From Basidiobolus meristosporus CBS 931.73 (taxonomy: Eukaryota > Fungi > Basidiobolomycota), in contig MCFE01000645.1 of assembly GCA_002104905.1 (NCBI GenBank), positions 1-50,107 of the forward strand: a stretch of 50,107 nucleotides of DNA. The letters run 5' to 3'. The translations under genes and the position numbers were made by a program. The notes beneath the pieces are model-generated. The model ran no database searches and was not told the origin of the DNA. It saw only the letters and a program-made list of their open reading frames with translations. This document shows positions 20 to 39,960 of the stretch, piece after piece (the first letter of the stretch is position 1; each line of letters opens with the position of its first letter).

Positions 20-1415
20 ATAACATAACTTGCAGTTTTCCTATTTGAATACACACTTGTTATTGAATAATCAATAAAATTACCAACTCATTTTACAAGG
101 ATGAATTTTGCAACACAATGATGGGTTACATGGCAATTGATGGTGTTTGATTATGACGCTATAGTGGGGTGACAGTGACACCCACTGACAGATGTGCTTG
201 TTCCCTTATTTTCTACTTCCCTATATCTCTACTACACTTATTTTAGTTTTATAACATTTGTCTTACCCAATCAGTACTATCCCATAAGCTGGTTGACTAT
301 CACACCTGCTTACCTTATTGCATAAGTTACCCCTCACTTTATGTAAGATTACTAGCTATAAGTACTACTATATTAGGCAAGTACCCACACCAGTACCCGT
401 GACACATGATCAACATGTGTCACCATCTGTACCATTTCCATACCATATATGGTATCTCCATATTACACAGGTTTCAGAATACTGATTCCTGATTGGTTGA
501 ATGTGCTGTGCCTCTTAGAACCTTCCGGCACCTACTTAGAACATTCTTAGGTTATTCTGATGTCATTAAGATTTCTATTGATATCCAGAACCTTCTGGAA
601 CACCATGATTAGTAATCACTTAGCCAGTAAGAAAAGTATATTAGGGAGGCTATCCCTCAACAATAAATCATCATCCTTTTTATCAATATACCAACTTGTT
701 GATTAGTGTGATCACTGCTACCTGCTGCTACCTGAACTTCCAACCCTAGGCCACAGGACACTCCCAGGAAGCTGCGCTGACAGCCAACTGACCTTGGAGG
801 CACTACTTGTGAGGAATACTCAGAGTAGTTATCTTTCATTATATTTGATTCTTTCCCAAATTTGTTCTTGTACAGGCAAAGATACTTTTCTGTCTTTGTA
901 ACTATTGACCACAGCTGCATTCTTATCAAGTCCCTGCTGGTGGAGTTTACAGTTGTTTTGACTTTGGAAGCTTTAGTACATTGTCATCTAAAGGATGCTG
1001 AACCCAGCACATACTTTTGTTAAGATGCCAACTAAGTTTGGGATTGCAGCTCAATAGTTTTCCCTTGACAAGCTTGTGGCTTTATTCCCCTTCACATTAG
1101 ATTAGAGACAGAACTCAAGTATTCCTAGCAAGCTTTTGCCAGAGATTATTGCACCCAGTGAACACTCCACACACAAAACACTTGAGAAGTGCTGGACATA
1201 TCTCTCCCTTGAACCTATACACCACCACAATGCAAAGAAAATCAGATGAATTAAGCCAAATGTGGCAATTTGTTGCAAATCACCTCTACACAATTGCAGA
1301 TATCCTATTTGATGATAGAATTGTGAGTAGTTCAACTATAAACTCATCAAGTCTTTGTTTGAGAACAATTTTTGCAACAAAATGATGCAATTCAGGGCAA
1401 TTGATGGATATTCTG
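20..1415 (+). repeat. Two copies of a ~140-bp unit (about 20-159 plus 1230-1260, and 1270-1415) upstream of the DDE transposase; third copy at ~49520-49690
   Basis: Shared core TTTTGCAACAnAATGATG...GGCAATTGATGG and TCCTATTTGA at ~105-145, ~1370-1408 and ~49621-49659. The first unit is split by A1. Confidence 0.6.
160..1229 (+). mobile_element. Family A solo LTR-like unit (1070 bp), copy A1
   Basis: Starts TATAGTGGGGTG (TGTAGTGGGG in other copies) and ends TACACCACCACA. Flanked by 4-bp duplication ACGC (156-159)/ATGC (1230-1233). The uninterrupted homologous site is at ~49620-49695. Near-identical copies at 6230, 18388, 30796, 31856, 37911. Confidence 0.85.
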
Positions 1416-1761
1416 TTGTGTTGTATTATGATTAGTTTGGGGCTTTTTATACAATGTAGAGGCTAATCAACAATATACAACAACTTCCAGTTTGCTAACA
1501 CTGAAATGTTTACTGGGAGTTTGATATACCAACAGAAGATATAACTTTCACTAATATTCTCAATCTTAGGCTCAAAATATACTATAGGCAGTGTTTCTCA
1601 CTTCTAAAGCAGTGTTCTGCCTTTCTGTTGACTAATGGGATTATTTACTTTCATAGTAGCTTTTCCTTATTTGGAGGTCACTTTTCTTTCTGAGAAAATA
1701 CCTCCTAATATAGAAATTCCAAACTCCCCTTTAACCTAAAGGCATGTGTTGCAGAAGTCTC

Positions 1762-1819
1762 TAAAGGGGCCTTTAGACCTAAAGGGGTGTCTTTAGAGTA
1801 AAGGGGTTTCTTAGAGGGG
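1762..1819. repeat. Degenerate ~19-bp tandem repeat, 3 copies
   Basis: TAAAGGGGCCTTTAGACC / TAAAGGGGTGTCTTTAGAG / TAAAAGGGGTTTCTTAGAG. Confidence 0.5.
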
Positions 1820-3239: not shown

Positions 3240-3531
3240 CACTATAAGAGATGAAAATGCTTGAGGAATTCATGCACTATGGTCATGTGATATGGCTACC
3301 AGTGTGAGCTCTTGCCTAATATAGGGGCAGCTACATCTAGCAATCTTATGCACAGGGGGGAATAACTTGTGCCATGAAATAAGCAGTTGTCATAGTTAGC
3401 TGGCTTATGTGTTAGTGCTGATCAAATATATCAAATGGGATAAGCCAAAATAAGGGTAGTAGAGATGTATCAATGTTGAAAATATGGGAATGAGCACATC
3501 TGTCAGTGGGTATCACAGTGACCCCACTACA
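3240..3531 (-). mobile_element. Old, diverged 5' fragment of a family A/D LTR-like unit
   Basis: Ends ...GAGCACATCTGTCAGTGGGTATCACAGTGACCCCACTACA, the reverse complement of the A terminus. Upstream CTTGCCTAATATAG and CTGGCTTATG blocks match A. Confidence 0.7.
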
Positions 3532-3559
3532 GCAGATGGATACAACAGCTTACATTGAG

Positions 3560-4255: not shown

Positions 4256-4649
4256 TCTTTCTGGTGTTACAAGTCTTGGTAAAAGAGTTGTAGAGGAATA
4301 GGGAGATTAGCTAGTATTGTATTCACTAAAACTTGAACTGATCTTTATTGAGGTTCCAGCAGCTTCTTATATACATTTTGCCAGATCAATTGCTGACTAA
4401 TTTTATTTCCTAATGTAGGCTGTGGCTGATGACTCATTTAATTGCATCATCATCACCCAATGAGATCCTACTTCATATATCTATTCCTGTCTGATAAGGA
4501 TCTGCTGATTCATTAGCTGACTAAAACTACAGATTTGATAGATAATACTGATATACTGATAAGCTTAGCAAATAACTAATTGATTTGACTAAAAGCTAAT
4601 CTAACTTAACCATTCAAGTGGCAGATCATAGCATTCTCCCCTACTAAAG

Positions 4650-6229
4650 TGGATAGGGCTCTCCTGATTCCCTTTTCTTGTATACAAATATCTTGATGGT
4701 TCAGTATTATCAGTAAGTCTTGCAAGCTTGAGTCTGTCCCTATGCACTAAGTCTTCCCAGATATTGCCTTGTTTGTCCAATAGTTGGTCAGTTGCAAATG
4801 GACATTCTCTAATGATCTTGAATGGTCCTGTCCATTGTGGCACAAATTCTTCCAAGTGTTGTTTCTTAGCAATATAAAGTTCCCAACTGTCAATGCTTCT
4901 GGTGTTATAGTCTTATCAAATCTCTGCTTCATCTTTTCTGCACTTTGAGATACTTTGATCTGTGCTTCTTGCTGTCTTTGTTCCAGTTGCTGGTGTCTAC
5001 TTGGCTGACTGAGCTCCTCTTCTAAGGTGTTTGTAAGCTTTAGTTGTGTGAGATTTTGTGTAATTCTTGGCTCACATCCATACACTAGTAAAATGGCAAT
5101 TGTTGAGTGGTGTTGTGTACTCTGACTCTGCATGCAAAGAGTGCTTGGTCTATATATTCATCCCATCAACTGACAACTCCATTTGCATACTTGGTCAGCA
5201 TTTTTCCAAAAAATTCATTAAACCGCTCAATTACTCCATTAGTTCTGGGGTAATATGCCAAGATTTTCAAGTGTTTGATCTGCTGCATTTCCAGGTAAGC
5301 TTCCAATGTTGTTGCCATAAAGTTTGCACCTCAATCTGATAGAATCTTTACAGAGCATCCAAAATTCATAAGAATCTCATGGTAGATGAAGCTTGCAACT
5401 TCTTGTTCACTGGCTATAGGTATAGCTTTAGCCACTGGCCATTTAGTGGCATGGTCAATTGTTACTAGGATTCAATGGTTGCATTTCCTGGTAGTCAGTA
5501 GTCTTCCAAGAAAGTCAATTACCCATCTTTTGAATGGTCTTAAAGGCTCCAAGGGAAAGAGTTTGGCAATTGTCTGCAGTTGGCCTAGGTTGATTTGGCA
5601 ATTTGAGCATGCTTTCACTAGCTACTGAATGTCATGTTTCATTCTGGGCCACCATGCTCTGGCTTTCACAAGGCTATTGGTTCCTTCAATTCCAAGATGT
5701 CCATATCCATTTTGTAGCTTATGTATTTAATCCAGGCAAGCCACATAAGGGTAATTGGTAATAGGGCTTCCATCAACAACTTGGTCAAGTGTTTCCTCCT
5801 GTACTACAAATTTGCTGGCTTCATCCTGAATTATCTTCTGGATCTCTTCATCCACCTCATTAGGAATGGCTTGGTCCTCCAAGTACCTTGGTAATAGGCT
5901 AGGCCAATATGATTCATGCACCAAGTTGAGTGGTGCAACTTATTCTAGTCTTGATAAGGCATCAGCAACTGTGTTGTTTTTTCCAAGGCAGTAGACAATC
6001 TCCAAGTCAAATTACTGCATGTATTCACTCCATCTTGTCATTCTTCTAGAGAGTACCCTCTGAGAAAATATATACTTGAGGGAGGCACAATCAGTCTTCA
6101 CAGTGAACTTGGCTCCTTCAATATTGCATCTCCATGTCTTCAAAGTGTGTATTATAGCAAGCATCCCCTTTGCATGCACTGGATAGTTTTGTTCTGCTGA
6201 GTTCAGTTTCTTGGATTCAAAGGCAACGG
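4650..6229 (-). pseudogene. pol: B1 RNaseH-integrase remnant
   Basis: ORF pieces 6012-6251, 5727-5924, 4747-5133 and 4601-4855 translate to Ty3 RNaseH, linker, integrase and GPF motif. Confidence 0.85.
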
Positions 6230-7135
6230 TGTAGTGGGGTAACAGTGACACCCACTGACAGATGAGCTCATTCCCATATTTGCTACTTCCCTATATCTCT
6301 ACTACACTTATTTTAGTTTTATAACATTTGTCTTACCTGATCAGTACTATCCCATAAGCCAGTTGACTTTCACACCTGCTTACCTTAATGCATATGTTGT
6401 CTCTCACTTTATGTAAGATTACTAGCTGTGAGTGCTTATATATTAGTCAAGTACCTGTGCCAGTACCCATGACACATGATCAACCTGTGTCACCATTCCT
6501 ACCATATTCATACCATATATGGTATTCCTATGTTATACAGGTTTCAGAACACTGATTCCTGATTGGTTAGATGTGCTGTGCTTAGAACCTTCCAGCACCT
6601 ACTTAGAACATTCTTAGGTCATTCTGATGTTATTACAATTTTTATTGACATCTGGAACCTTATGGAACACCATGATTAGTAATTACTTAGCCAGTAAGAT
6701 AAGTATATAAGGGAGGCTATCCCTCAACAATAAATCATCATCCTTTTTATCAATATACCAACTTGTTGATTAGTGTGATCACTGCTACCTGCTGCTACCT
6801 GAACTTCCAACCCTAGGCCACAGGACACTCCCAGGAAACTGCGCTGACAGCCAACTGACCTTGGAGGCACCACTTGTGAGGAATACTCAGAGTAGCTATC
6901 TTTTATTATATTTTGATTCTTTCCCAAATTTGTTCTTGTACAGGCAAAGATACTTTTCTGTCTTTGTAACTATTGACCACAGCTGCATTCTTATCAAGTC
7001 CCTGCTGGTGGAGTTTACAGTTGTTTTGACTTTGGAAGCTTTAGTACATTGTCATCTCAAAGGATGCTGAACCCAGCACATACTCTTGTTAAGATGCCAA
7101 CTAAGTTGGGGATTGTAGCTCAATAGTTTTCCCTT
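6230..7135 (+). mobile_element. Family A unit A2, 3'-truncated
   Basis: Begins TGTAGTGGGGTAACAG after flank ACGG. Colinear with A1 up to CAATAGTTTTCCCTT, then joins B1 gag via AGC microhomology. Confidence 0.85.
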
Positions 7136-7972: not shown

Positions 7973-8316
7973 TCCCGATTTTCAGACATCTTGAGGGAGG
8001 CTTCTTCTTTCTTCAGGAGGGATGTTTCTGGTTATTGCTGCCATCAATGGTACAAGTCTTGGTATAAGAGTTGTCAAGGAATAGGGAGTTTAGCTAGTAT
8101 TGTATTCACTAAAACTTGAACTGATCTTTATGGAGGTTCCAGCAGCTCCTAATATACATCTTCTCAGATCAATGGCTGACTAATTGTATTTCCTAATGTA
8201 GGCTGTGGTTGATGACTCATCTGATTGCATCATCATCACCCAATAAGATCCTACTTAATATACCTATTTCTGTCTGATAAGGATCTGCTGATCCATTTGC
8301 TGACTAAAGCTACTGG

Positions 8317-10740: not shown

Positions 10741-10769
10741 GTTTGGGAATGATTATTTGCATCTGTAGC

Positions 10770-11213: not shown

Positions 11214-14200
11214 TGTTGTGATATACTGCTTATATGCTTAAGTTAAATCAGTTTTAGTCAAAACAACTAATTTATGCTCAGCCTATTAATATATCAGTGC
11301 TTTCTGTCAGATCAGTAGCATTAGTCAGCAGATGAATCAGTAGATCCCTATCAGACAGAAACAGTTACATCTAGTAGAATCAAATTGTGAAATGATAATG
11401 AAGTTAAATGAGCCATCAGCCCCTCCTTACCTTAGCAAATACAATAGGTCATCAATTGATCTGGCAATTGGTATTTAAGGAGCTGCTAGAATCTCTATAA
11501 AAATCAGCTCAAATTTTGGTGAATACAACACTGGCCAAAGTCCCTATTCCTCCACAACTGTTTTATTAAGAATTATAACATAGTCCATTGGCATTGAAAG
11601 AGATGATGAGACAAAGAGATCAATTATTGGAGTAAGGATATATCAGACCCGGTCAGTCTCCTTAGGGAGAACCAGTACTTTTTATGTCAAAGAAGTATGG
11701 AATGCTTAGGATGTGCATTGGCTTTTGAGCCCTCAACTATGTTACCATAAAGAATAAGTTCCCCACACCTTGAATTGATGAGCTTTTGGACTAACTCAAT
11801 GGAGCCACCATATTAAGCAAGATTGACATCATGTCAGGAAACTACCAGATTAGAGTGAAATCAGAAGACTTCCCTAAGACTTCATTCAGAACCAAATATG
11901 AACATTACAAGCACTTAGTTATGAGTATTGGCCTCACCAATGCCCCTGCAACACTCATGATCTTGATGCAAACAGTCTTTCAGGAGTACTTTGACAGGTT
12001 TGCAGTAATATAGCTAGATAACAAACTAATATAAAGTAAGACAAAAGAGGAACACTTGGTGCCCATTGAAAAGATCCTGAAGAAGCTAAGAGAGAACAAG
12101 ATGCATGGCAAGCTAGTAAAGTGTGAATTCTTGAAGGAACATGATGAATACCTGGGACATATAGTGACCAGCACAGAAGTGCCTTTAGACCCCAAGTAGG
12201 TCAAAGTCATCAAAAATCTGAAGTAGCCCCATAGCATATCAGAACCCAGATTGTTCCTTGGAATTGTTTCCAATTAATGGAGACTTGTCAAGTACTTGGC
12301 AAGTATTGCAGCCCCTTTGACTGATAATTTTAAGAAAGACAACACCTTAAAGTTGGTTATAGCCTGTGATACTACATTTCAGACGCTCAAGAATGAACTT
12401 GCTAAGTTGCCAAGCTTAAGAATTCCAGACTTAAGAAAAGAGCTTACTCTGTGTGTAGATGCTCCAGGTTACTCAATTGCTGGAGTACTGAGCTAAGCAC
12501 AAGATGAAAAGGATACCCAGTCACTTTTGAGGCAAAGAAACTGAATTCAGCAGAACAATACTATCCAGCACATGAGAAGGAGATACTGCCATAATACAAT
12601 GCTTGAGGTCCTAGAGAAGCTAAATTGATGGAGTAAAGAGCACTGTGAAGACATATCATTCCTCACTCAAGTATATATTTATTCAGGAGGGACTGTCCAG
12701 ATGAGTGGCCAGCTGGAGTGAATACACACAGCAATTTGACATGGAGATTGTTTACTGCATTGGGAAAACCACATGGTTGCTGATGCCTTATCAAGACTAG
12801 AACAAGTTGCACAACTCAACTTAGTGCATGAATCAGATTGGCCTAGCTTATTACCAAGGTACTTGAGCAACCAAGCCATTCCTAATGAGGTGAAATAAAA
12901 GATCAGGAAGATAATCTTGGACATAGCCAGCAAGTTTGTAGTAAATGATGAGCCACATCACCAAGTTTTTGATGGAAGCCCTGTTGCCTATTATCCTTAT
13001 GTTGCACTACTGGATTTATCATAGAAGCTACACAATGGATATGGACTTCTTGGGATTGAAGAAGCCTGCAGCCTTGTGAAAGCTAGAGCATGGTAGCTCA
13101 GAATGAACCAGGATATTGAGAAGCTAGTAAAATTCTGCCCAAGTTACCAAGTCAACCAAGGCCAATCCCAGAGAATTGCTTTACTCTTTCCCCTGGAATC
13201 TGCACAACAACCTCAGAGATGGGGAATTGACTTTATTGAACAACTGCCAAACACCAGAAAATGCAATGGTTGCCTCCTGGTAGAGATTAACCATACCATT
13301 AAATGGCCAGTGGCCAAAGCTGTACCTGTAGCAAGTGAACAAAAAGTTGCAGGTTTCACTTACCTAGGTATCCTTATGAAGGTTGGATACCTGGTAAAGA
13401 TTCTATCCTATAGCGCAGCAAACCTTATAATAAAGACATTGGAAGCTTACCAGGCATTGCTGCAGGTCAAACACTTGAGAACCTTTGGTTATCACCATAG
13501 AAATGATGGGCTCATTGAGCAGTTTAATGATTTATTGGGAAAAATTATGTCAAAGTATGCAAACAGAGCTGTCAGTAGATGGGATGAGTATATAGAGCAA
13601 TCACCTTTTGCCTGAAGAGTTACAATGCAAAGCACCTCTCAACAATTGCCATTTTACTCAATATATGGATGCGTAACAAGGATTTGGGGAGATCTTACAC
13701 AACCTAAGCTACAGGTGTCTTTGAATATGAACTCAGTCAGCCTAGCAGACACCAGCCACGGGAGCAAAGATCTTAAGATGCCCAGGCCAAAGCTTCTCAT
13801 AGTGCAGGACAGATGAAGCAGTGATCTGATAAGACTATATCACCAGAAGCATTGAGAGTTGGGAACCTAGTATTGTTGAGACACAGTACATGGTATAAAT
13901 CTGAGCCACAAAGGACAGCACCATTGAAGATCATCAGAAAATGTCCATTTGCAGCTAATAGCTGAAATATTTGAGAAATATATTGAAAGAGAAATGTAGT
14001 ATTAGAAAATTTAAGTGTTATTCACTGGATGACCTATTGAGGTGCAGCACAGTATTAACACTTATTGCAGAGCTACATACATGTAACTATATTTTCATTG
14101 TTAGGACATTCTCAGGAGTATATCTACCAAGTTTCAGCTCATTTGGACAAGTTTCAAATTTTCCTAAAATTCTGTACTTCACAAAAGTCCTAATAATTTG

Positions 14201-14660: not shown

Positions 14661-14679
14661 ATTAGGCTGCTAGCCAATG

Positions 14680-16447: not shown

Positions 16448-18387
16448 TCATACATGTCTTGATATAAGAGGTGTAGAGGAATAGGGAGTTTAGCTACTAT
16501 TGCATTCACTAATACTTGGACTGCTTTGTATTGAGGTTCCAGCAGAATCTTGGATACCTTTTGCCACATGGATTGCTAACTAATTGTATTTCCTAATGTA
16601 GGTTGTGGCTGATGACTCATTTGATTGCATCATCATCACCCAATAAGATCCTACTTAATATATCTATTCCTGTCTGATAAGGATCTGATGATTCATCCGC
16701 TGACTAATGCTACTAATTTGATAGAAAACACTGAAATACTCATAGGCTAAACATATGACTGATAGATTTGACTAAAACTGGCCTAACTGAAATACTCAAG
16801 CAGTAGATTATATGAATCTCCCCTGCCAAAGCTGAGAGGGTTCTCCTGAGTATTGTTTCTTATGATACCAATATCTTGATGGTTCAGTATTGTTGGCAAG
16901 TCTTGCAAGTATGAGTATGCCTCTATGAACCAATTCTTCCCCAATATTCCCTTTTTTGTCCACTACTTGGTAAGTTGCTAATGGACATTTTCAGATGATT
17001 TTAATTGGTCCCATTTATTGTGGCTCAAACTTCTTCTGAGTACTGTTTCTCAGTGATATAAAGTTCCCAACTGCCAATGATTCTGGTAATATAGTCTTAT
17101 CAAATCTCTGCTTCAGCTTTTCTGCACTTTGAGATACTTTGGCCTGTGCCTCTTGATGCCTTTGTTCCAGCTGCTGGTGTCTACTTGGCTGACTAAGTTC
17201 ATCTTCCAAGGCATCTGTAAGCATTGGTAGTGTGAGATCTCCTGGAATCCTGGGCTCACATCCATACACTAAGTAAAATGGCAATTGTTGGGTGGTGTTG
17301 TGTACTCTAACTCTGCATGCAAAGAATACTTGGTCTGTATGCTCATCCCATCTAACAACAGTTCAATTTGCATACTTGGTCAGCATATTTCCAAATAATC
17401 CATTGAGCTGCTCAGTAACTACGTTTGTTCTAGGGTGATATGTCAAGGTTTTCAAGTGTCTGATCTGCGGCATTTCCAGGTAAGCTTCCAATGTCTTTGC
17501 CATAATGTTTGCTCCTCTATTGAATAGAATCTCTACAGGGCATTCAAACTGCAAAAGGATCTTATGATAGATAAACTTGCAGCTTCTTGTTCACTGGCAA
17601 TGTGTACTGCTTTAGCCACTGGCCATTAAATGGTATGGTCAATTGCTACTAGGATCCAACGGTTGCATTACCTGGTAGTTGGCAGTCTCTCAATAAAGTC
17701 AATTCCCCATCTTTTGAATGGTCTTACAGGCTCCAAGGGAAAGATGGTCTTACTGGCTCCAAGGGAAAGAGTTTGGCAATTTCTGTGGTTGGCCTTGGTT
17801 GATTTGGCACCACCATGCTCTGGCTTTCACAAGGCTATAGGTTCCTTCAATTCCATGATGACCATATCCATTGTGTTGCTTATGTATTAAGTCCAGGCAA
17901 GCAACATAAGGGCAATAGGCAATAGGGCTCCCATCCACAATTTGATGGAGTGTTTCATCCTGTACCACAAATTTGCTGGCTTCATCCCGGATAATTTTGA
18001 TCTTTTCATTCATCTCATCAGGAATGGCTTGGTCCTCCAGGTACTTTGGCAATAGGCTAGGCCAGTCCAATATATGCAACAAGTTGAGTTGTGCAGCTTG
18101 TTCTAATCTTGATAAGGCATCAGCAACTGTGTTGTTTTTCCTAATGCAGTAGATAATCTCCAATTCAAATTGCTGAATGTATTCACTCCATCTTGTCATT
18201 CTTCTAGAGAGTACCTTCCAAGTAAATATATACTTGAGGGATGCATAATGAGTCTTTACAGTGCATTAGACTCCTTCAATATAGCACCTGCATGTCTTCA
18301 GACAGTGTATTATAGCAATCATCTCCTTCTCATGCACTGGATAGTTTTGTTCTGCTGAGTTCAGTTTCTTGGATACAAAGGCAACGG

Positions 18388-18610
18388 TGTAGTGGGGTAA
18401 CAGTGACACCCACTGACAGATGTGCTCATTCCCATATTTGCTACTTCCCTATATCTCTACTACACTTATTTTAGTTTTATAACATTTGTCTTACCTGATC
18501 AGTACTATCCCATAAGCCAGTTGACTATCACACCTGCTTACCTTAATGCATAAGTTGTCTCTCACTTTATGTAAGATTACTAGCTGTGAGTACTTCTATA
18601 TTTGGTAAGT
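18388..18610 (+). mobile_element. Family A 5' fragment A3 in B3 RNaseH
   Basis: TGTAGTGGGGTAACAG after flank ACGG; same junction as at 6230. Confidence 0.85.
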
Positions 18611-19113
18611 CTTCGATTCAAAGATGACTGGGCAGCTCTTGACCTTGTGTTCTTGGCCCAACACTCCACTAATTGCAAGATCTGAGGCATCTGTGCACAG
18701 AGTAAACTCTTTTCTGAAGTCAGGTATTCTTAAGCTTGGCAGCTTAGCAAGTTCATTCTTTAGCATCTGAAAGGCAGTATCACAGGCTATGTCCCACTTG
18801 TAGGTATTGTCTTTCTTGAGAATATCAGTCAAAAGGGCTGCAATACTTGCAAAGGACTTGACAAATCTCCAATAATCCAAGGTATGGGGTACTTATTCTT
18901 CACAGTAACTGAGTTGAGGGCTCTATAGTCAATGCACATCTTAAGTGTTCCATCCTTCTACTTCACAAAAAGTACTGGTGCTTCTCAAGGTGACTTGCTG
19001 GGCCTGATATATCCTTGCTCCAATAGTTGATGTATTTGTTGCATGATATCTTCCAATTCCAGTGGACTAATTATGTAGGGTGTCATACTCATTGGAGGGC
19101 TATCTCCTGGGTC

Positions 19114-22443: not shown

Positions 22444-25400
22444 TGTCATAATCAGATGACATCCCTGGTCACCAATGCTCAAGCTAAATCAAGTTTGTGA
22501 AGAAATCCCAGTTCCTTCTAGAAAGTTATACCACATTCTACCAGCTTCTGGAAAGCTCCATATCAACATTACACAATGGAGCATTATATGGAAGCCCCTC
22601 TTTGCAATTAATGTAGATCAATACCATATGTGGTAAGCACATGTCATATGACCTAATCACATGATCATCTGACCCCAGACATATCCCCATGTGATATTCT
22701 AGTCTGTTCTTTAGTATATTTCTATCTTGGCACACTGACTGTGCCTCACCCCAGAACCCCATCAGTATTAGCCAATATATCTTGGCATCTATATTGCCAA
22801 TATGTATATATAGTCCTATCCCCCCTTGTGTATTCCTCCATCTGATAAACACAGGTTTTGAATAAACAGCCTTGCCTTGGAAATCTGCCTTGCCTTGTTG
22901 ATCCATACCTATGTCCTTTCTGGACCTGCCTTGTCTAGCTCTACTCTCCTGCCTTGTGTCTATTCATAACAGTTTTATCAAACTGCTCTTAACATACCTG
23001 TGGATCTTGGCCTTCTATCTTAAGTTCTTGAGAAGAACTTGTAAAGGAATACCTACCATAAGTATTACCCTGAAGCTTTCCCTATTCTTGTCCTCTAAAG
23101 TCAAAGATGCTTTATCATTGTAAAATTCCTGGCCAAAGCTGCATTCACTTTTTTACCCTGCTGGTGTAGTTTACAGTTGTTGCAGTATTGGAAGCTTTAT
23201 TACAATACTCTATCAAAGAACATTAAAGCTAGTGCCTTCTGAAGTGCCACTAACTTATTCAAAGCTGCGGATTATGGCTGAATAGTTGTATTCTTGACAA
23301 ACTACTGGTTTTATAACCTACATATTAGCCAGTAGTATCCAGTATTCCTGAACAAGCTCAAGAAACTTCACCACCTCCTGCTACCCAATCATTTCCAGTC
23401 CAGAGTACAACCTTACAATTATCCTGGCTGCCTTTGCCTAGCTGCAACAAGACAATGCAGATCTCCAAAACACTGTTGCTCAGCCTCAGAGCCAAAATAC
23501 TCATTAGCCTATCCATACTCCCTCAAACCATGATCCCAAGAGCACTTCCACTACTAAGTCCAGTGGCTCCCAAGATGAGTTCCAAGGCTTCATCAACATA
23601 GTTAAACACCACTTGTTGTTACAACCCAATTAGTTCCTAACATAACAAGCAGAAGTTGGATATATCTCAGACCTGCTCACTGGAACTGCCCAGAAATGGT
23701 TCTCCCCTTTGGTGTAAGCCAACTGCCCTCTACTCAGTGACTACCATGCCTTCCTCACAAAAATGGAGCTAACTTTTGGCAACATTGACCAAGCCAAAAC
23801 TGCTTCCAACAAGATCAAGAACTTGAAGTAAGGAAACAGACCTGCATCTGTGTATGCTTCTGAGTTCTGGCTACTAGTCAGTGATTTGGGCCTTTGGGGT
23901 GATGCTGTCCTAATTAGCCAGTTTCAAGATGGACCCAATGATGAAGTCAGTGACCCACTACTCACACTCCCTGAGCCAACTACCTTGAGCAAAGCTATAC
24001 ATCAAGCAATCCAACGTGACAATTGCCTTTTTCAGAAGAAACAGAAGCTCTGAAATACTTATCAGCCAACCTCCTTCCCAGTAATCCAGTCTCCTAGTAC
24101 TAAGCCTGATGATCCTATGCAACTTGACAGTGCCAAATACAAGAAACTTACAAATGAAGAAAGATCTAGTCATCAAGAGGCAAACCTCTGCCTTTGCTGC
24201 AGCCAACTAGGCCCAAAAAAAGTCCAGCTTCCAACTTCTGCAATCAATCATTGAACAGTCTTCTCCAGTGTTGTTGGGAAATGGCAGTGTCCAGTTACAA
24301 TGACAGGCTTGCAACTGGACCCTCCAATGAAAATTCAAAACATTCAAGAAACATCATACACTAACAAATCCATACAATACTTGGAATGCCTGTCAACATT
24401 CATATCCCTGAGTCCAGTCCTGTCCATGTCCTTGCCATCATAGATTCTGGAGCTTTGTCCTGTTTCATTGACCAGTCCTTTGTCCAGAAGCACAAAATCC
24501 CCACTATTCTGAAATCCTGTTCTGTCCAAGCAGAAGTTATTGATGAAAGATCCCTTTCCTCTGGTGCCATTACCCGTGAGACATGTCCACTCCAGCTGTC
24601 CAGTACTGGTCATCATGAAACAATAGCCTTTAACATCATCAACTCTCCCCACTACCCCATAGTCCTTAGAAGCTCATGGCTTAGTCGCAATAACCCAGCT
24701 ATCAACTGGAAGACCAAAATCCTGACATTCCTCAGAGTCTGTTAGGTCAACTCCATGAAAGCACCTGACTTTTCAGGTGAGAGAGTACCATTTGGCTCTA
24801 CCTACAACCTCTGGCAACTTGAGGTGAAAGAACTCTATGGTTATATTTAAGAAAATATCCAGAATGGCTTTATTCAGCACTCTAAGTCCATAGCTGATGC
24901 CCCAATCCTCTTTGTCAAGACAAAAGATGGTACCCTAGGAATGTGTGTAGACTATTGTGCACCAAATAAAATTACAATCAAGAACCAGTACCCTTTGCCC
25001 CATATCAACACCCTGTTGGATCAACTCTCCGTTTCCAAAGTATTTACTAAAATTGACCTCAGAGGAGCTTATAACCTTGTCAGGATAAAGACTGGTAATG
25101 AATGGAAAACTGCCCTCAGAACAAGATATGGTCACTTGGAGTATAAGGTTATGCCATTAGACCTCACCAATGCACCAGCTGTCTTTCAACACCTGATGAA
25201 TAGCATATTCTGTGAGTACCTTGACTAATTTGTGGTTATTTACTGTGATGATATCCTGGTCTACTCCCAGACTCAAGAAGATCATAAATTCCATGTGAAG
25301 AAAGTCTTGACCAAGCTTGAGACTACTGGCTTCTAGGCCAAGCTGAAAAATGGGAGTTTTACCAGAAATAGAAAACCTGATGCCCTGTCCAGAAAGGTGG

Positions 25401-27300: not shown

Positions 27301-30300
27301 CCAAGAGTAGAATGCAACGGGGTGCAACGCATTGTCCTCATCATACTGGGAGGGTATGGCACCAAGGGCAAAATCAGAAGCATCAGTATCCACTATGAAT
27401 TGCTTCTCAAGGTCAGGGTGGGCAAGCAGGGGGGCCTTCAGGAAAGATTTCTTGAGTTGGTTGAATGAGGTGGATTACTCCTCATTCCAGGCAAAAGGTG
27501 TGTTCTTCTGCGTAAGCTTTGTCAGAGGGGTGACTATCTTGGAGTAGCTAGCTATGAACCTGCAATAGAAGTTGGCAAATCCCAGGAAGGATTGTACTTC
27601 CTTGACAGAGCTTAGAGTTTTCCAGGATTGGACTGATTCAACTCTCTTGCGGTCCATTCTTGTTCCCTCAGGGCTGATGAGGTAACCAAGAGATTCCACT
27701 TCTCTCTGGTCATATTCACATTTCTCTAGCTTGGTGTAGAGACCGGCAGAGTCTAGTTTTTGCAATACTTTCTTGACATGTTCATCATGTTCATCTTGGT
27801 TCTTGGAGTATATGGGAATATCATCAAGGTAGATTACCACAAACTAGTCAAGGTATTCACAGAATATGTCATTCACAAGGTGTTGAATCACAGCAGGAGC
27901 ATTGGGGAGGCCTAATGGCATTATTTTTTACTCAAAGTGACCATATCTTGTGCAAAAGGCAGTTTTCCATTCATCACCAGGCTTAATTCTGACAAGATTG
28001 TAAGCTCCTCTCAAGTAAATCTTAGTGAAGACTTGGGCAGCAGATAGCTGATCCAACAGTGTGTTGATCAGGGGCAGGGGGTAGCGGTTCTTGACTGTGA
28101 TCTTATTCAAAGCACAGTATTCCACACACATTCTGAGGGTGCCATCCTTCTTCTTGACAAAGAGGATTGGGGCTCCAGCAGGTGATTTGGAGTGCTGAAT
28201 AAAACCCTTCTGAAGGTTTTCTGGAATATAACCATGGAGTTCTTTCAACTCCAGCTGGGAGAGGTTATATATTGGGCCAAATGAAGGGGCTTTTCCATCT
28301 TCAAGGTCAATAGGGCAGTCATAAGGCTGATGGTAAGGGAGGAGTAGTGCTTTCTTCTTGTCAAAGACATGGGCAAACTCTTGGTACTTGGCTGGTATAT
28401 TTGCTGAGGGGGCTCCTTCAGCTTGCTAAGTATCTTGGGCTGTTAAACTGTTGGCAACAGTCTTTTCATGGTTATCAGTGTCTGGAGATTTCATGGAGTT
28501 GACTTGGTGGGATCTGGTGAATGACAGGATCTTGGATTTCTAATCAATACTTGGATTGTGGTATCTCAGCCATGAGCTTCCAAGCACAATAGGATAGTGT
28601 GGTGAGTTGATGATGTTGAAGGCAATTCTTTCTTGGTGAGCAGTACTGAACAGCTGGAGTAAGCATGTTTCATGGGCAACGGTACCAGAGGAGAGTGATC
28701 TTCCATCAACTTCTACTTGTACTGGACAGGATTTCAAGGTAACCGGAATAGAGTGCTTCTGGACAAAGGCTTGGTCAATGAAACAGGATGAAGCACCGGA
28801 ATCAATCAGGGCTAGGACTGGTACAGGACTGGAGTCAGGGATCTGGATTTTGACAGGCATTCTCAAGGACTGGATAGATTTTGTGGCAAAGGAAGATTCT
28901 TGGATATGCTGGATATTCATGGGTGGGTCCAGTTGCAAGCCTGTCAATGCAACTGGACATTGGAGTTTCCCAACAAATCTGAATCAGGTTGATTACTGGA
29001 GGTCTGCATCAGCTTGAAGCAGGACTTCTTGTAGGGGCAGAACTTGGCAAAGTGACCTGGTTGGTCACAGTATAGACAGAGGTTGGCTTGTTGATGTCTG
29101 GACTTTTCACTCTTTAATAGTTTCTTGTATTTGGTACTATCAATCTGCATAGGATCTTCTGGAGTGACTTGGGGAGCAGGAGGGGTTGGGACTGCAACAA
29201 GAATGTGACTTTGACAGTTCTTTTGCTTCTTCTGGAATAGTCTGTTATCACACCGCATTGCTTGGTGCATAGCTTCAACCAGTGTATCTGGATCTGGGAG
29301 TGCAAGTAGCAGATCAGAAACTTCATTATGGATGCCATCCTGGAATTGGCTAATCAAGGCTGCTTGATGCCAGGAGCTGGGGTCACTGGAGAGTTGTTGG
29401 AATTCTGAGGCATAGACTAATGCTGGCTTGTTCCCTTGTTTAAGTGTCTTGATCTTGTTGGCAGCAGTACTGGCTTAGTCAAAGTTACCAAATGTTAGCT
29501 CCATTTCAGTGAGAAAGGCTTGGTGGTCTCTGAGTAGGGGAGAGTTGGTCTCCACTAATGCAAAACCCACTTGAGAGCTGTACCAGTAAGCAGGTTGGAG
29601 ATGAAGCCAACTTTGTCCTGGTCAGTGGGGTACTGGTTGGACTGGAGTGCAAGATTGTTCTTCACCATGTTGATGAAGCCATGGAATTCATTATGAGAGC
29701 CATTGAACTTGGTAGCAGGAGTATACTTGGGTTCTTGGTAGACTGGGACATGGCTAGTTTGCTGGACACTTTGGCTCTGGAACTGAGTAAGAGTGTTTCT
29801 GAGGTCTGCATGGTCTTGCTGCAGTTGGGTAAAGGCAGCCATGAGCTTGGCAAAGTTCAGCTCTAGGTTGGACATGGTAGAAGAGGAAGGCAGATGAACT
29901 TGCAAGGAATACTGGAATATACTAAACTAGATTGTGGGTTTGTAAAGCCACCAGTATGTCAAGAATACCACTAGTGTGCCACAGTCCCCAACTTAAATAA
30001 GTCAGTGTCACTTCAGAAGGTACTGGTTTTGACATCCTTTGATAGAGTATTGTACTAAAGCTTCCAATACTGTAACAACTGTAAACTCCACCAGCAGGGT
30101 AATAAAGTGAATGCAGCTTTGACCAATAGTTTTACAAAGATAAAGTATCTTTGCCTTTATAGGACAAGACTAGGGAAAGATGATGGGTGATACTGACTGT
30201 GAGTATTCCTTTTGGAAGTTTTCTTAAAACTTTGGGCAGAAGGCAGGGGAAATGGATTGGGTCACCTGATCATGTGACCAAGTCATGTGACCTGCTATTT

Positions 30301-30690: not shown

Positions 30691-30692
30691 AA

Positions 30693-30795
30693 CTGGCTAA
30701 GTGATTACTAATCATGGTGTTACAGAAGGTTCTGGAGATCAATAGAAATCTCAATGACCTCAGAATGAGCTAAGAGTACTCCAATTGGGTGCTGG
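30693..30795 (-). mobile_element. Internal fragment of a family A unit, the target of A4
   Basis: ACTGGCTAAGTGATTACTAATCATGGTGTT...GGTGCTGG aligns to A internal sequence ending at A's own GTGCCGG site. Confidence 0.75.
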
Positions 30796-31846
30796 TGTGG
30801 CAGTGTGTAAGTCCAAGGGAGGGATATGCCCAACACTTCTCAAGTGTTTTGTGTGTGGGGTGTTCACTGGGTGTGATAACCTGTGGCAAAAGCTTGCAAG
30901 GAATACTTGGGTTCTGTCTCTGGGCTAATGTGATGGGGAATAATGCCACAGGCTTGTCAAGGGAAAACTATTGAGCTACAATCCCCAACTTAGTTGGCAT
31001 CTTAACAAAAGTATGTGCTGGGTTCAGCATCCTTTGAGATGACAATGTACTAAAGCTTCCAAAGTCAAACAACTATAAACTCCACCATCAGGGACTGGAT
31101 AAGAATGCAGCTGTGGACAATAGTTACAAAGACAGAAAAGTATCTTTGCCTGTACAAGAACAAACTTTGGAAAGAATCAAGTATAGTAAAAGATACCTAC
31201 TCTGAGTATTCCTCACAAGTAGTGCCTCCAAGGTCAGTTGGCTGTCAGCGCAGTTTCCTGGGAGTGTCCGGTGTTCTGGGGTTAGAAGTTCTGGTAGCAG
31301 CAGGTAGCAGTGAACACACTAATCAACAAGTAGGTATTTTGATAAAAGGGATGATTATTTATTGTTGAGGGATAGCCTCCCTTATATACTTTTCTTACTA
31401 GCTGAGTGATTACTAATTATGTTGTTCCAGAAGGTTCTGGAGATCAATAGAAATCTTAATGACATCAGAATGAGCTAAGAGTATTCTAAGTAGGTGCCGG
31501 GGGGTTCTAAGAGGTACAGCTCATCCAATCAATCAGGAAACAGTACTATGAAGCCTGTGTAACATAGGGATGCCATGTATGGTGTGGAAATGGTAAGGAT
31601 GGTGTCACAGCTACTGGTTCAGATACTTACCAAATATAGAAGTACTTACAGCTAGCAATCTTACATAAAGTGAGGGATAACTTATGCAAAAAGGTAAGCA
31701 GATGTGATAGTCAACCAGCTTATAGGATGGTACTGATCAGGTAAGACATATGGGATAAAACTAAAATAAGTGTAGTAGAGAAATAGGGAAGTAAGAATAT
31801 GGGAATGAGCACATCTGTCAGTGGGTGTCACTTTGATCCCACTACA
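30796..31846 (-). mobile_element. Complete family A unit A4
   Basis: Both termini present; flanks CTGG (30792-95) and CCAG (31847-50), i.e. decayed CCGG. Confidence 0.85.
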
Positions 31847-31855
31847 CCAGTCCAG

Positions 31856-32440
31856 TGTGGTGGTGTATAGGTACAAGGGAGAGATACGTCCAACACTTCT
31901 CAAGTGTTTTATGTGTGGGGTGCTCACTGGGTGCAATAAACTCTGGCAAAAGCTTGCTAGGAATACTTGGGTTCTGTCTCTAATCTAATGTGAAAGGGAA
32001 TAAAGCCACAAGCTTGTCAAGGGAAAACTATTGAGCTACAATCCCCAACTTAGTTGGTGTCTTAACAAAAGTATGTGCTGGGTTCAGCATCCTGTGAAAT
32101 GACAATGTACTAAAGCTTCCAAAGTCAAAACAACTGTAAACTCCACCAGCAGGGACTTGATAAGAATGCAGCTGTGGTCAATAGTTACAAAGACAGAAAA
32201 GTATCTTTGCCTGTACAAGAGCAGACCTGGGAAAGAATCAATTATAATAAAAGATACCTACTCTGAGTATTCCTCACTAGTAGCACCTCCAAGGTCAGTT
32301 GGCTGTCAGCACGGTTTCCTGGGAGTGTCCTGTGGTCTGGGGTTGGAATTTCAGGTAGCAGCAGGTAACAGTGATCACACTAATCAACAAGTTGGTATAT
32401 TGATAAAAGGGATGATGATTTATTGTAGAGGGATAGCCTC
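31856..32440 (-). mobile_element. Family A unit A5, 3' half only
   Basis: Starts TGTGGTGGTGTATAGG after flank CCAG; truncated at GGATAGCCTC. Confidence 0.85.
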
Positions 32441-33707: not shown

Positions 33708-34133
33708 ACAGCTTTATGTCACTGTTCATTAACTGGTTCCCACACATCCTGGTCTTCAGCTGGTACTGCAAGTTCTAGCACCTCATCTGCCAGTCTTTGC
33801 CATAAATCATTGTAATATTCCAGTGCATCTTCTTGAGCACTGCTCTTGAAGTAGTGCTGTACCTCTTGGTGTGCCTATTAATGTTCCTAAATTCCACAGA
33901 AGGCATTGTGATAGTCTTTCAAGCTCTTGACATTGTAGCCTTGTCTGTCAGTAGGATCTCCACCCTGTCAACAATGGAGGATGTGGAGGCTGTGGTAGAC
34001 CAATTGCCTTTTTTGCAAACTCATCTACTGTGCTGGACTATAGCTCAACTAGCTGTGCTTCCAACTCTTGTGGAAACAGCTACTTTCTTGTTAATAATTC
34101 TTCTTGGCTATGATAAGATTCAGTCTGTTCCGG

Positions 34134-35623
34134 TGTGGTGGTGTAGAGGTACTCCTGGGAGAAGCTACACAACTCAAGGTGTGTGAGGTGTCTGATGGGT
34201 GCAATAACCTCTAGGTCTAAACTGCTGGTGTCTTTGTCAGTATGTCTCTATGGTAAAAGCTCCTGCTTCTCTAGCTTCCTAGGTGCTCCAAGTGTCTCCA
34301 AAGGCCTCTGTGTGTCTTGTGCACTACCCTGAAAAGCTCCTTGATGGCAGGTCTGAGATGTACTGTTGAGGGCAGGTGCAGTGATCAGCTGCTAATCAAT
34401 AAGGTAGAAGTGTTACTGATAGAAGGGATGATTTATTGATGAGGGATTGCTTTCCCTTAAATAATTTTCCTGATTGTCAAGTGATTACTAATGACAAGGT
34501 TCTAGAAGATTCTAGGTATCAGTGGAATTCTTGATGACATCACTGTGAGCTAAAAATATGCCAAGAATGTCCTGGAAGGTTCTAAAAGGCACAGCACTCT
34601 CAACCAATCAGGAATCAGTAGTGTGAAACCTGTGCACGTAGGAATACCATATATGGTATTGAAATGGTAGGGATGGTAACACAGACCTAGGTCATGTGTC
34701 ATGGGTACTGACGCGGGTACTTGCCTTATATAGATAAATCTACTGATCACAAAGCTGAATAACATCTGGGATAACTAATGCTATTAGACTTGTTCCGTTG
34801 GATAGTGCCACATTGAGCCATGAGTGCCAAATAGTGCCATAGTGTGCCTGAGAGTCATAGCAAACCTAAACTTGGCCACAGAGTGTGACATATAGTTCTG
34901 CTTATTCATGCAAAGCAGCCCCTGTGTTTCACCTACTGTGCGGGAGAAAATCAATTTTTTTACCTTTTTTTTGAGATCAAAATTGTGCATGATGTAATAG
35001 ATCACAGACAGACTGAAGATATGCATCTGGTACATAATACCCATGGCACTCTAAATCTAGCCCCACAGGCTTGTAGCATGTCACAAAAATGCATGGCACT
35101 ATCTTGGTCCACTGGTACTATCTGGCACTATAAGTGCTTTGTATAGGTTCTACTTTAGGGCTAATATTTAAATATAGTGCCAGATAGTACCAGTGGACCA
35201 AGATAGTGCCATGCATTTTTGTGACATGCTACAAGCCTGTGGGGCAAGATTTAGAGTGCCATAGGTATTGTGTACCAGATGCATATCTTCAGTCTGTCTG
35301 TGCTCTTTTATGTCATGCACAATTTTGATCCCAAAAAAAAGGTAAAAAAATTGATTTTCTCCTGTACCGTAGGTGAAACACAGGGGCTGCTTTGCATGAA
35401 TATGAAGAGCTATATGCCACACCCTGTGGCCAAGTTTAGGTCTGCTATTACTCTCAGGCACACTATGGCACTATTTGGCACTCATGGCTCAATGTGGCAC
35501 TATCCAACGGAACAAGTCTAATAACTAATCAGGGTAAACATCATATGGGGATAATACTGATAATATGGGCAAAAGAAGAATGGGATAATACTGATAAGAT
35601 AATATGTGGATAAGTATATTATA
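34134..35623 (-). mobile_element. Family D LTR-like unit (A-related, ~750 bp) containing the nested foldback
   Basis: Shares the TGTGGTGGTGTA end and the CCAATCAGGAATCAGT and ACCATATATGGTAT blocks with A. Left flank is CCGG. The right boundary is less certain. Confidence 0.7.
34785..35520. mobile_element. 736-bp foldback element: ~347-bp inverted arms, ~42-bp spacer, termini TAGACTTGTTCC...GGAACAAGTCTA
   Basis: Arms are directly readable as a near-perfect inverted repeat; AT flanks both sides; repeated GTGCCA/TGGCAC motifs. Confidence 0.9.
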
Positions 35624-37199
35624 ATGACTTCTTGAGTGGTCAATACTTTTTCCTTAATAAGTGTTGTGCTAATGCATCTATGTCTGTCTGCTTGTCCCTA
35701 ATTGGCACTCTTCTAGCTACCTGACATCTGCTTGACATTTGTCAGGAGCTTTTGGCCCTGCTTGTATCAGGCCCTTGAGGAAGCCACATGTTTTTAGCCA
35801 TAGCACCCATGTTCTTCATCCTCTGATAGTTTCTGCTATTCTTAGGATACTTTCTTAGTATACCAATGCTGGCACAAAATCTGTTTACCTGTTAGAATCC
35901 AGCATAATGCTCATGGAACAAGTCATATGCATTGTGCTTGGCCTTGAGCTCCTGATGGTCCCATGGTATGCTGATCTCAAGGTGATATCAAGCTATACTT
36001 CTGACAGCCACTTGTATATTAGCCCACTCTTCATCAATACACTCAATGGCTTCCGAGCTCTTCAATGTCTTTTGATTTTTGGGCTTTGGTATAAACACCA
36101 TATTGTCTCCCTCCCATGATGTGATTGGTTCTTTTGTAAGCTTTATCTTTGGGCACTGTTGATATGCTTCAAAGACTGTACAGTGTTCCTCTGCTGTTAC
36201 ATTGGGAAGTGGCTCAATTCTTGGCTGTGATATTGAGCAACTTGAGCTCCTTCTTTGCAGCAAAGATAATGCTTTGTCTACTTGGGATTTTATTGCTCTA
36301 CATGTTTTATCTGCTCATCCTGCTTCTAGACTATATCCTGATTTCTCTGGGCCATTACATCTATCCTATCAGCCCTGGCACCTAATTGCTTCCTTAATGC
36401 TTTTGTATGAGCTGACAACATACTTGATAATATGGGTGGTGGTGATGTTATGACAGCCATTTGCTGGTCTTCAACTAAGGGTACTGCAATTGCTACATCC
36501 TTGTCTGCCTGAGCATAACAGTCAGCTTGTGAGTTGCAGAGGTTCTCTATTGCCAACGTGAATGAGAGCCCAAGGAGTCTGCATTATTACCTTCAGTGGG
36601 CACACTGTTAACATGGCCTTTTTTGGAAGTAGCCCTGCTTGTTGCACTGAGTTTCAAAGCAGGCTGTTGTCCTACTGTTCTTCTGCTGCCATCAGCAGTG
36701 GGGCTTTGTTGGGAGCCAGACAGCTTTGCCTCATTTTTTGGCATCATATATATGGTAGTGAGTCAATCCAAAGGGAGAATATGTTTGCAAATACATGTGT
36801 ATGTGGTGCCACAGCTTTATTCATGATGCTTACTATGGTGGGTCATCATTGAATCTTACACTCATATAGGTGCAATGTCTCAAATACAAGACTGTCTTAA
36901 ATTCACATGAGTATTGACCTGAAAGGGATATAATAGCAATACATTGTTGATGGTCAAACTGCTTACCCCATAGACAAGACTAGTTTGACCCAACACTATA
37001 AGAGAAAGGAATAAAGACCATGTGGCTATTGTAGCAAGCCTCACAGTCATGAAGCATGTAGACAGCATAGGAAGCAATAAAAGGATCATGGCCTGAGTTT
37101 TGCCACACAAGTCATATTTGACCATTCATCACTGTACCAACATTATCTTGCCGGCCAGTTGATACCTCCACATTGGCACCTTCCCTCTTTGTCACCTTG

Positions 37200-39960
37200 T
37201 GCTAATTGAGTAAGGTGAGCTAGTGATGCCTTTAGGCTCACCTCAGCCTTCTGAATATGGCATGCAGAGTGATAGACCTGACAAAGAAGGTTCACTGATG
37301 GATTGTGTGCCCATCTTCCCTGACAACAGTACCATGTATTAGCCGGGTCAAATCCCAAGATGCAATGTGAAAACGCCCATAGAAACAAATGCCAAAGATA
37401 CTTTATGGAGCCAAGTGAGCCCACTAATCCATCTACTGGTGAATGATGAAATGATGTGGCCAGAGAAGTGGCATGTTTCCACCAATATCAGTAATGGGGG
37501 CTTTGAGTATTTATTACTACTTCTTGCCAAAATAATTCCAGGATGCAACTTACCATGTATATGGTACAAGTGGACAACCGTCATATGGCTGACAACATAT
37601 GATCCAGGGACTGTCCTGATTCCAGCATGTGTTAACAGTTACATGGCATTCACATGCAAAAATGCTACCATTGTAATGTGTGCATATTGTCAGGAATCCA
37701 CCACCATTGCGGGAAAACATGGTTCACATTTTGGATATATTCTGGTACTACCCTGTCTGAGGAAGCTAATGCAGTCCAACAAATATTACAAGGCTATACA
37801 GTACTGCACTCAGTATCAATGAAGCGCAAACATATCTGATATATATGATGGCAAACATTACAAACAGCTAAGGAGTAAGGCTACTTTGAAGGTACATATG
37901 ACCTTACCATTGTGGTTGTGTATAAGTCCAAGGGAGAGATGCATCCAACACTTCTCAAGTGTTTTGTGTGTGGGGTGTTCACTGGGTGCAATAAACTCTG
38001 GCAAAAGCTTGCTAGGAATACTTGGGTTCTGTCTCTAATCTAATGTGAAAGGGATTAAAGCCACAAGCTTGTCAAGGGAAAACTATTGAGCTACAATCCC
38101 CAACTTAGTTGGCGTCTTAACAAAAGTATGTGCTGGGTTCAGCATCCTGTGAAATGACAATGTACTAAAGCTTCCAAAGTCAAAACAACTGTAAACTCCA
38201 CCAGCAGGGACTTGATAAGAATGCAGCTGTGGTCAATAGTTACAAATACAGAAAAGTATTGTTGCCTGTACAAGAACAAACTTGGGAAAGAATCAATTAT
38301 AATAAAAGATACCTACTCTGAGTATCCCTCACTAGTAGGGCCTCCAAGGTCAGTTGGCTGTCAGTGCAGTTTCCTGGGAGTGTCCTGTGGTCTGGGGTTG
38401 GAAATTCAGCTAGCAGCAGGTAGCAGTGATCACACTAATCAACAAGTTGGTATATTGATAAAAGGGATGATGATTTATTGTTGAGGGATAGCCTCCCTTA
38501 TATACATTTCTCACTGGCTAAGTGACTACTAATCATGGTGTTCCAGAAGGTTCTGGATATCAATAGAAATCTTAATGACATCAGAATGACCTAAGAATCT
38601 TCTAAGTAGGTGCTGGAAGGTTCTAAGAGGTACAGCACATCCAACCAATCAGGAATCAATATTCTGAAACCTGTGTAACATATGGACACCATAGATGGTA
38701 TGGAAATGGTAGGGATGGTGGCATGGGTTAATCATGTGTCACCGGTACAGGCGCAGGTACTTGCCTAATATAGAAGCAGTTATAGCTGGTATTCCTACAT
38801 AAAGTGAGGGGTAACTTATGCAATAAGGTAAGCAGGTGTGATAGTCATCCGGCTTATGGGATAGTACGGATTGGGTAAGACAAATTGGATAAAACTATAA
38901 TAAGTGTAGTAGAGATATAGGGAAGTAGAAAATATGGGAATGAGCACACCTGTCAGTGGGTGTCACTGTCACCCCACTACACTGTTGCCTTAGCACTTGA
39001 TGAATTCTCATTAAAGAAGTACTGGATCAGCAAATTCTGCTGGCCACATATTCTCTTCAATGAGAATCTGCCACCCTTCTCACAGTATCAGAGCAATAGT
39101 CCAATGGTAATCTCTGTGGTATTGGGGCCTAAATAACTGCACAATCTGGATAGCTACCTGTATCCATTGCAGGATGCATTTTGTATGCTTTGCAGCAGGA
39201 TATCAGTAAATAGCTGTCATTTAAAAGTGTACATTATTATCTGCATTGGAGATGCCCCAGCCATCAGCCAGAGGGCAGGTTCTTTCTGGCACAATGGATG
39301 GTATTGCTGTTGAATGTGTGAGATCCAGGGGATTTATTCCATAGCTCCCACACATTATTATTGCTCTAACACCCAAACTAGAAACATCATCTTCTCACAG
39401 AGAAAACATACAGAGGTAAGCAGGCAATTGCAGCAAAGTTGGCAAGCTATAAGCCATTGGCCAGAATATGGAGTCAATCAGAAGCCAGAGATACTTAAGA
39501 TAGAGGGTATCTGTCAGAGCAAAAGTTTTACTCTGGGAGCAATGCATTGGCTTTTCAACAAGATCCTTACACTGATGACCAAGTTATACATGGGGCATTT
39601 CAAGCTAAATGAGCACTTCAAGATACCAGAAATTTTTGAAAGAATTGGCAAGATACTAGAGAGTATCTGATGCACTAAGTACTTTTCATGGGCTCCAATC
39701 AATATTCATATGCATATGCAACAGTACCAGTGCAAAGACTGGATGAACTGGATATGTATTTATTCAAGTGGCACTCTGAAGCCATTCCTACCAAGAGTAC
39801 ATTGGAAGCATTGGGAGCTGTATGTGGACATTGCGGGAATATTTATCCATAAGTGGATTACCAATAGTGTTAGTTTGCGATCTGCCATAAGATTGTTAAG
39901 AGGGTCACTAATTCCAAGCTGCTGATACTATGACAGTCTCTAAGCAGGATCCTGACAGCT
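37200..39960 (+). pseudogene. tnp2/Transposase_21-like transposase, interrupted by A6, 3' third deleted
   Basis: ACVNSYMAFT...CAYC; DIYDGKHY; DLTVALALDEF; WPHILFNENLPP; GDAPAI...HNGWYCC.MCEIQG; DWMNWICIYS. Confidence 0.85.
37911..38981 (-). mobile_element. Complete family A unit A6
   Basis: Flanks CCAT (37907-10) and CTGT (38982-85), i.e. decayed CCGT. Removing the unit and one flank restores in-frame D-L-T-V-A-L-A-L-D. Confidence 0.9.

Follow-up and report, generated by a model that had tools for sequence, protein, structure and literature searches.

The stretch analysed here (the window) comprises positions 1 to 50,107 of contig MCFE01000645.1 from Basidiobolus meristosporus CBS 931.73 (assembly GCA_002104905.1). 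A self-comparison showed that nested repeats fill nearly the whole of these 50,107 bp, and several decayed Ty3/gypsy coding regions were found among them. This report concerns one repeat family, termed A, and its relative D. These are abundant units of about 1.07 kb that are probably solo long terminal repeats (LTRs) of a gypsy-type retrotransposon, inserted by an integrase with an intrinsic preference for 4-bp targets centred on CpG. The window has a G+C content of 40% and contains 183 CpG, corresponding to an observed-to-expected ratio (O/E) of 0.09, in agreement with the CpG scarcity noted in a preliminary description of this DNA. The O/E of TG plus CA is 1.37, and TA is not enriched, a pattern that points to deamination of methylated CpG and not to repeat-induced point mutation. 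As a share of all dinucleotides in the window, TG and CA together account for 16.5%, TA for 7.4% and CG for 0.37% (0.00365); these values serve as the background below.

Family A copies were collected within the window by BLAST with the copy A1 as query. Three of them, A1, A4 and A6, are complete. The units and their flanking tetramers are as follows.

A1, 160-1229, + strand: complete unit, 1070 bp; flanks ACGC (156-159) and ATGC (1230-1233) on the + strand, the same in element orientation (5'/3').
A2, 6230-7135, + strand: truncated, unit positions 1-911; 5' flank ACGG (6226-6229, +).
A3, 18388-18610, + strand: truncated, part of a copied patch that, including host DNA, spans 18331-18610; 5' flank ACGG (18384-18387, +).
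A4, 30796-31846, - strand: complete unit, 1051 bp; flanks CTGG (30792-30795) and CCAG (31847-31850) on the + strand, in element orientation 5' CTGG and 3' CCAG.
A5, 31856-32440, - strand: truncated 3' part, unit positions 491-1077; 3' flank CCAG (31852-31855, +), which is CTGG in element orientation.
A6, 37911-38981, - strand: complete unit, 1071 bp; flanks CCAT (37907-37910) and CTGT (38982-38985) on the + strand, in element orientation 5' ACAG and 3' ATGG.
A7, 30692-30795, - strand: fragment of an older A copy, unit positions 366-473.
A-like copy, 3280-3531, - strand: diverged 5' fragment, 74% identical to A1; flank GCAG (3532-3535) on the + strand, CTGC in element orientation.
D, 34134-34733, - strand: related family, 77% identical to A across unit positions 209-566; 3' flank CCGG (34130-34133), still intact.

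Units of family A carry TGTAG at the start and CACA at the end, i.e., TG...CA termini. In A1, A4 and A6, the two ends form an imperfect inverted repeat matching at 9 of 12 positions, and their similarity extends over only about 10-12 nt; long terminal inverted repeats (TIRs) were sought and ruled out. The 3' terminus is common to D and family A. The 5' end of D was not located because its unit is interrupted by a foldback. This young foldback (34782-35523) lies in the 5' part of D; its arms, each 351 nt long and 95% complementary to one another, are separated by 40 nt. Because of the TG...CA ends, the short terminal repeat (10-12 nt), and a partial likeness to an LTR lying directly before gag, protease and reverse transcriptase (RT) coding sequence, the A units are read as solo LTRs that derive from a retrotransposon of the Ty3/gypsy type. 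The homologous LTR belongs to a gypsy family termed G and is 69-72% identical to A unit positions ~695-930 (~235 bp; at 23076-23204, 29943-30180 and 45524-45738); this homology is partial and modest.

The flank tetramers named in the preliminary description were all found to be present. Within each of the three pairs of flanks (A1, A4 and A6), the outer bases agree (A..C, C..G and A..G, respectively), but they vary between pairs, as expected of true duplications of different sites. Their centres are CG/TG, TG/CA and CA/TG. All three pairs thus mismatch only as a decayed CpG would, which bears out the proposal of a single NCGN duplication per pair followed by decay. With all three duplications now mismatched, programs that require exact target-site duplications (TSDs) do fail on this family, as had been predicted. 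The flanks suggest the targets CCGG for A4, D and probably A5, ACGG for A2 and A6, and ACGC for A1. At the A-like copy, both a partner flank and an empty site are lacking, so its flank may be either target site or internal sequence.

The length of the duplication was established at two insertions by paralogous empty sites. When the two flanks of A1 are joined, they give a gapless alignment to a paralogue in which ATGC occurs once (49673-49676, +). For A6, the paralogue to which both flanks align has one CCTT (43305-43308, +), and the repeats beside A6 (36416-37912 and 38985-39866) are contiguous in that paralogue (41811-44188). The target duplication of A1 and A6 is 4 bp. The same length had been put forward from an empty site near 49670, which is the A1 paralogue located here and is now joined by that of A6, and from the restored reading frame of a tnp2 host. 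The tnp2 identity was not confirmed for the A6 host: none of 10 open reading frames (ORFs) surrounding the site matched Pfam tnp2 at E ≤ 1.

A2 and A3 have to be counted as one event. A2 interrupts a minus-strand gypsy element, termed B, between its RT and RNase H coding parts. The homologous empty site in another B copy (12517-12520, -) reads CTGG in A2 orientation; the A2 site keeps CG, whereas two other B copies have TG there. Between A2 (6173-6433) and A3 (18331-18591), only 4 of 261 positions differ (~98.5% identity), whereas the surrounding host repeat is 80-86% identical. The near-identical tract runs from 57 nt of upstream host sequence to about unit position 204, and the A3 patch consists of 57 nt of host sequence followed by ~220 nt from the start of the unit. 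A 22-nt host duplication (18366-18387 and 18610-18631) brackets A3, whose original host site is CTGG at 18628-18631. Since the tract is near-identical while the host sequence outside it has diverged, and since the 22-nt duplication brackets it, A3 is not an independent insertion but a copy of the A2 junction, made as a templated patch or a conversion tract; it looks like the product of gene conversion, or of the repair of a break, involving dispersed repeats. The eight compatible flanks counted previously all fit a CG, TG or CA centre, but with A3 duplicating the A2 junction they represent only seven independent events.

All seven independent events have a CG, TG or CA centre, compared with 16.8% of the tetramers in the window (p = 3.8e-6). 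Among the 10 independent flank copies, the centres are CG in three, TG in five and CA in two, so CG has been retained in the exact centre of three, against a background of 0.00365 (p = 5.7e-6). The 12 CpG sites within the LTR bodies are now 18% CG, 46% TG and 36% CA, against a non-CpG transition rate of 2.5% per site, and the flank CpGs have decayed much like these internal CpGs. Calibrated on the LTR bodies, the likelihood ratios of a CpG target versus a target drawn from the background were 37, 237 and 237 for the three pairs. Together with three junctions from public contigs, described below, 10 of 10 events fit (p ~2e-8). The preference for CpG-centred 4-bp targets is thus confirmed as real.

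In one case the ancestral target can be read from the family itself. The segment 30692-32440 holds three A copies in one orientation, namely the 3' part A5, then 9 nt (CCAGTCCAG, + strand), the complete A4, and A7. The first four bases of A7 are the internal CCGG site of the family, now CCAG, and coincide with the 3' flank of A4. At this site (unit positions 366-369), A1 and A4 have CCGG, and A2, A6 and A7 have CCAG. Because the flank is an internal A site of known consensus, the ancestral target of A4 is independently known as CCGG, and A4 is nested at the family's own internal CCGG inside another A copy.

Contigs of two public runs of the same genome, both from one sample, were placed on A1 and its flanks (window 100-1290), and some 12,800 contigs of one run fall on the A unit. 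Three junctions were recovered. At junction 528->162, the start of A follows directly on CCGG at the same internal site that A4 occupies; at 693->160, the start of A follows CCAG; and at 1229->157, two units are separated by CCGC only. The 74 loose ends before the LTR start are heterogeneous, AT-rich noise except that the last four bases of their consensus are CCAG. Behind the LTR end, the consensus of the 40 and 38 loose ends begins with CCAT or GCAT, and CATCACAA is common to both runs. Although agreement with these consensus sequences is low (~0.4), the loose ends carry a signal from across the genome that is confined to the four positions duplicated on insertion. The previously proposed M-C-G-S rule for the target stands for its CG centre, whereas its outer M/S positions were set post hoc and are weaker, given CCAT or GCAT 3' of the LTR. 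Both the cluster of A5, A4 and A7 and the LTR-CCGC-LTR contig junction fit re-insertion into a regenerated target beside an older copy.

Could the same flanks arise without any specificity for CpG? The integrases of prototype foamy virus and murine leukemia virus (MLV) cut with a 4-bp stagger at a weakly palindromic target, of which the central pyrimidine-purine step is bent in the target-capture complex; these preferences are weak, and any flexible step is accepted. An integrase of this kind would find TG and CA simply as the commonest such steps, at 16.5% of dinucleotides, and indeed 7 of the 10 flank copies now carry TG or CA and the contig consensus is CA. TA, however, a step of the same flexibility with a 7.4% share of dinucleotides, occupies none of the centres, and CG was kept not only in the three flank copies but also in two of the three contig junctions, against 0.37% expected. 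The centres differ in all three pairs, for which an original TG or CA target would need two extra mutations, and the family consensus has CCGG at the site that A4 entered. Family A, unlike the foamy virus and MLV integrases, selects CG over TG, CA and TA even though CG is about 20 times rarer in the genome. An explanation by step flexibility alone is accordingly very unlikely.

The two other LTR families scored in the window serve as controls.

G, 22445-23322, + strand: gypsy 5' LTR, followed by gag, protease and RT; further copy at 44868-45746.
B LTR, 370 bp: 4265-4635, 8048-8315, 16451-16812, 19114-19483, 20607-20976 and others; LTR of the minus-strand gypsy element B.

The 5' flanks of the G copies, whose LTR starts with TGTCATGATCAC, are TATT, ATAT, ATAG and CTGT, and the flanks of the B LTR include GGTC, AATA and, once, CTGG. 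In the copies scored, a CG centre was never kept in either family, and the flanks are mostly AT-rich, in line with the previous statement that other LTR families here show no CpG bias. It follows that the bias belongs to A and D and not to the landscape. A and G are related LTRs that differ in target habit, the flanks of G being AT-rich.

Integration at short CG-containing sites is already known, and the target of family A matches a published one. Ginger1 elements are cut-and-paste DNA transposons with 40-270-bp TIRs and an enzyme close to the Ty3/gypsy integrase; their 4-bp TSD is CCGG in 75% of cases and ACGG/CCGT in 24%, and their termini are TGTNR (PMC2836005). Family A shares the CCGG/ACGG target spectrum and the TGTNR termini, but it is LTR-like, its host is a fungus and not an animal, and its terminal repeat is imperfect and 10-12 nt long instead of 40-270 bp. 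For fungal LTR elements, no published CCGG or CpG target was found in the literature searched. The likeness suggests a different identity for A, as a Ginger1-like DNA transposon of the cut-and-paste type, non-autonomous and moved by an integrase-like transposase, and no LTR at all. Such an identity would account for the exact match of the TSD spectrum and of TGTNR at both ends, for termini that are inverted at 9 of 12 positions, and for the fact that the A copies in the window are all stand-alone units of about 1.07 kb or fragments, never attached to coding sequence. It is nevertheless rather unlikely, as such an element should have TIRs of 40-270 bp where A has ~10-12 nt, as part of A is homologous to a gypsy LTR, and as Ginger1 has been reported from four animal species only (PMC2836005).

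The precedent of the Drosophila errantivirus ZAM, named alongside Tirant in the preliminary description, is genuine, although the much closer Ginger1 had been overlooked. The target of ZAM is CGCGCg, which its integrase binds directly, and ZAM also requires another binding site at a distance of 40-56 bp (PMC2527525). ZAM resembles A in being an LTR element of the Ty3/gypsy lineage with a short CG-containing target and specificity that resides in the integrase. It differs in that its target is an alternating CG run, compared with the single CpG of the CCGG-like sites of A, and no CGCG was found in any flank context of A.

With a gypsy-type solo LTR as the preferred reading, the following course of events is proposed. 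The integrase would cut with a 4-bp stagger at a CpG-centred site that is short and almost palindromic, CCGG first and then ACGG, ACGC and CCGC. In methylated repeat DNA, the duplicated CpGs would decay to TG or CA at the rate seen inside the LTR, and it is because of this decay that most duplications no longer match. Every insertion duplicates its own target, and a CCGG is also present within the LTR, so that fresh insertions would tend to land beside or inside older ones. By analogy with Ginger1 and ZAM, the preference would most likely be one for sequence and intrinsic to the integrase-DNA complex, with no need for recognition of methylation; it is on this analogy that we infer an intrinsic specificity for the integrase of family A.

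Methylation could still be what is recognized, either by the integrase or by a tether that binds methyl-CpG. The element would then find a safe haven in silenced repeats, and CpG-rich unmethylated genes would be spared. Targeting of silenced DNA has a parallel in the chromoviruses, chromodomain-bearing Ty3/gypsy elements that reach heterochromatin by tethering to histone marks and whose duplications have no sequence signature; A likewise accumulates in silenced repeats. All A insertions lie in repeats whose CpGs were evidently methylated (O/E 0.09, with an excess of TG and CA), the flank CpGs have decayed as the CpGs inside the LTR have, and A copies land in older A copies. The whole window, however, consists of repeats and offers no contrast class, so landing in transposons is the null expectation, and selection that purges insertions at unmethylated genic CpGs would give the same distribution. 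The earlier proposals that the element reads 5-methylcytosine, is steered into young repeats and parasitises other transposons thus gained no support from the window. The outer positions are constrained as well (C/A at position 1, G/C at position 4), which argues for recognition of a tetranucleotide and not of a modified dinucleotide. Drosophila has almost no 5-methylcytosine. It is in Drosophila that the integrase of ZAM binds its CG-rich target directly (PMC2527525), and Ginger1 has the same CCGG/ACGG target as A (PMC2836005). Methylation-directed targeting is hence considered unlikely; if true, it would be a new targeting principle, a retrotransposon using the silencing mark of its host for target choice.

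Several observations weigh against an LTR element with a CpG-centred target. Within the window, no paired A LTRs around a coding region, no primer-binding site, no polypurine tract and no integrase of family A were found, and all pol-like stretches, as detected by tblastn with gypsy pol, belong to other families. The sample is small, with seven events and three contig junctions. The centre of the contig consensus is CA on both sides of the element, which symmetric decay does not predict; a few multi-copy junctions may weigh on the consensus, or decay or target choice may be asymmetric relative to the element. The empty paralogue of A1 reads ATGC, and if ATGC had been the target and one copy had since undergone T>C, this would be only ~37 times less likely than a CpG target. 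The CCTT in the paralogue of A6 neither backs nor contradicts CCGT. The single flanks CTGG (A5) and CTGC (3532-3535) may have been TG originally and are uninformative alone. Finally, the 5' flank of A4 is not what A7 predicts, so the A4 locus was rearranged or hit repeatedly.

The preference has practical and evolutionary consequences. In a genome that destroys CpG, an integrase that requires CpG leaves mismatched TSDs at almost all of its insertions, so that LTR finders relying on exact TSDs will under-call one of the most abundant families or misplace its bounds. The regeneration of the target by each insertion accounts for the stacks and tandem pairs of solo LTRs in the window. If an LTR family does share the CCGG/ACGG specificity of Ginger1, this specificity would be a heritable trait of one branch of gypsy-type integrases, common to retrotransposons and cut-and-paste transposons.

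Searches beyond the window gave little. The 20-nt 5' terminus of A had no match in metagenome contigs in an exact-pattern scan. Three contigs from other organisms have CpG O/E values of 0.72-1.32 and contain no family A. Protein searches for further loci returned one weak match for the integrase ORF, cluster representatives with ≤40% identity, and ≤74% identity for the RT ORF.

Some further features of the window deserve mention. The 10 nt upstream of A2 (6220-6229) and of A6 (38982-38991) match, reading AAGGCAAC followed by GG or AG. The host repeats of A2 and A6, tested for homology, have no further similarity around this shared flank, and the contig consensus contains no extended motif matching it. 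The match could be due to chance, since the 6 nt outside the TSD would agree in roughly 1 of 4000 pairs, or to a wider target context. A unit of ~1.5 kb is duplicated in tandem at 45916-48927, with copies that are 88% identical, and the longest ORFs of the window (≤254 amino acids) lie in this duplication. No Pfam or Atlas match was obtained for them, the 254-amino-acid ORF having no usable Atlas match. In element orientation, the LTR of B is preceded by the purine tract GGGGAGAA and followed by TTGGTAGCAGCA, which reads as a primer-binding site of the initiator-tRNA type. One B LTR copy (16451-16812) has internal sequence on either side, which indicates a tandem B element with one common LTR.

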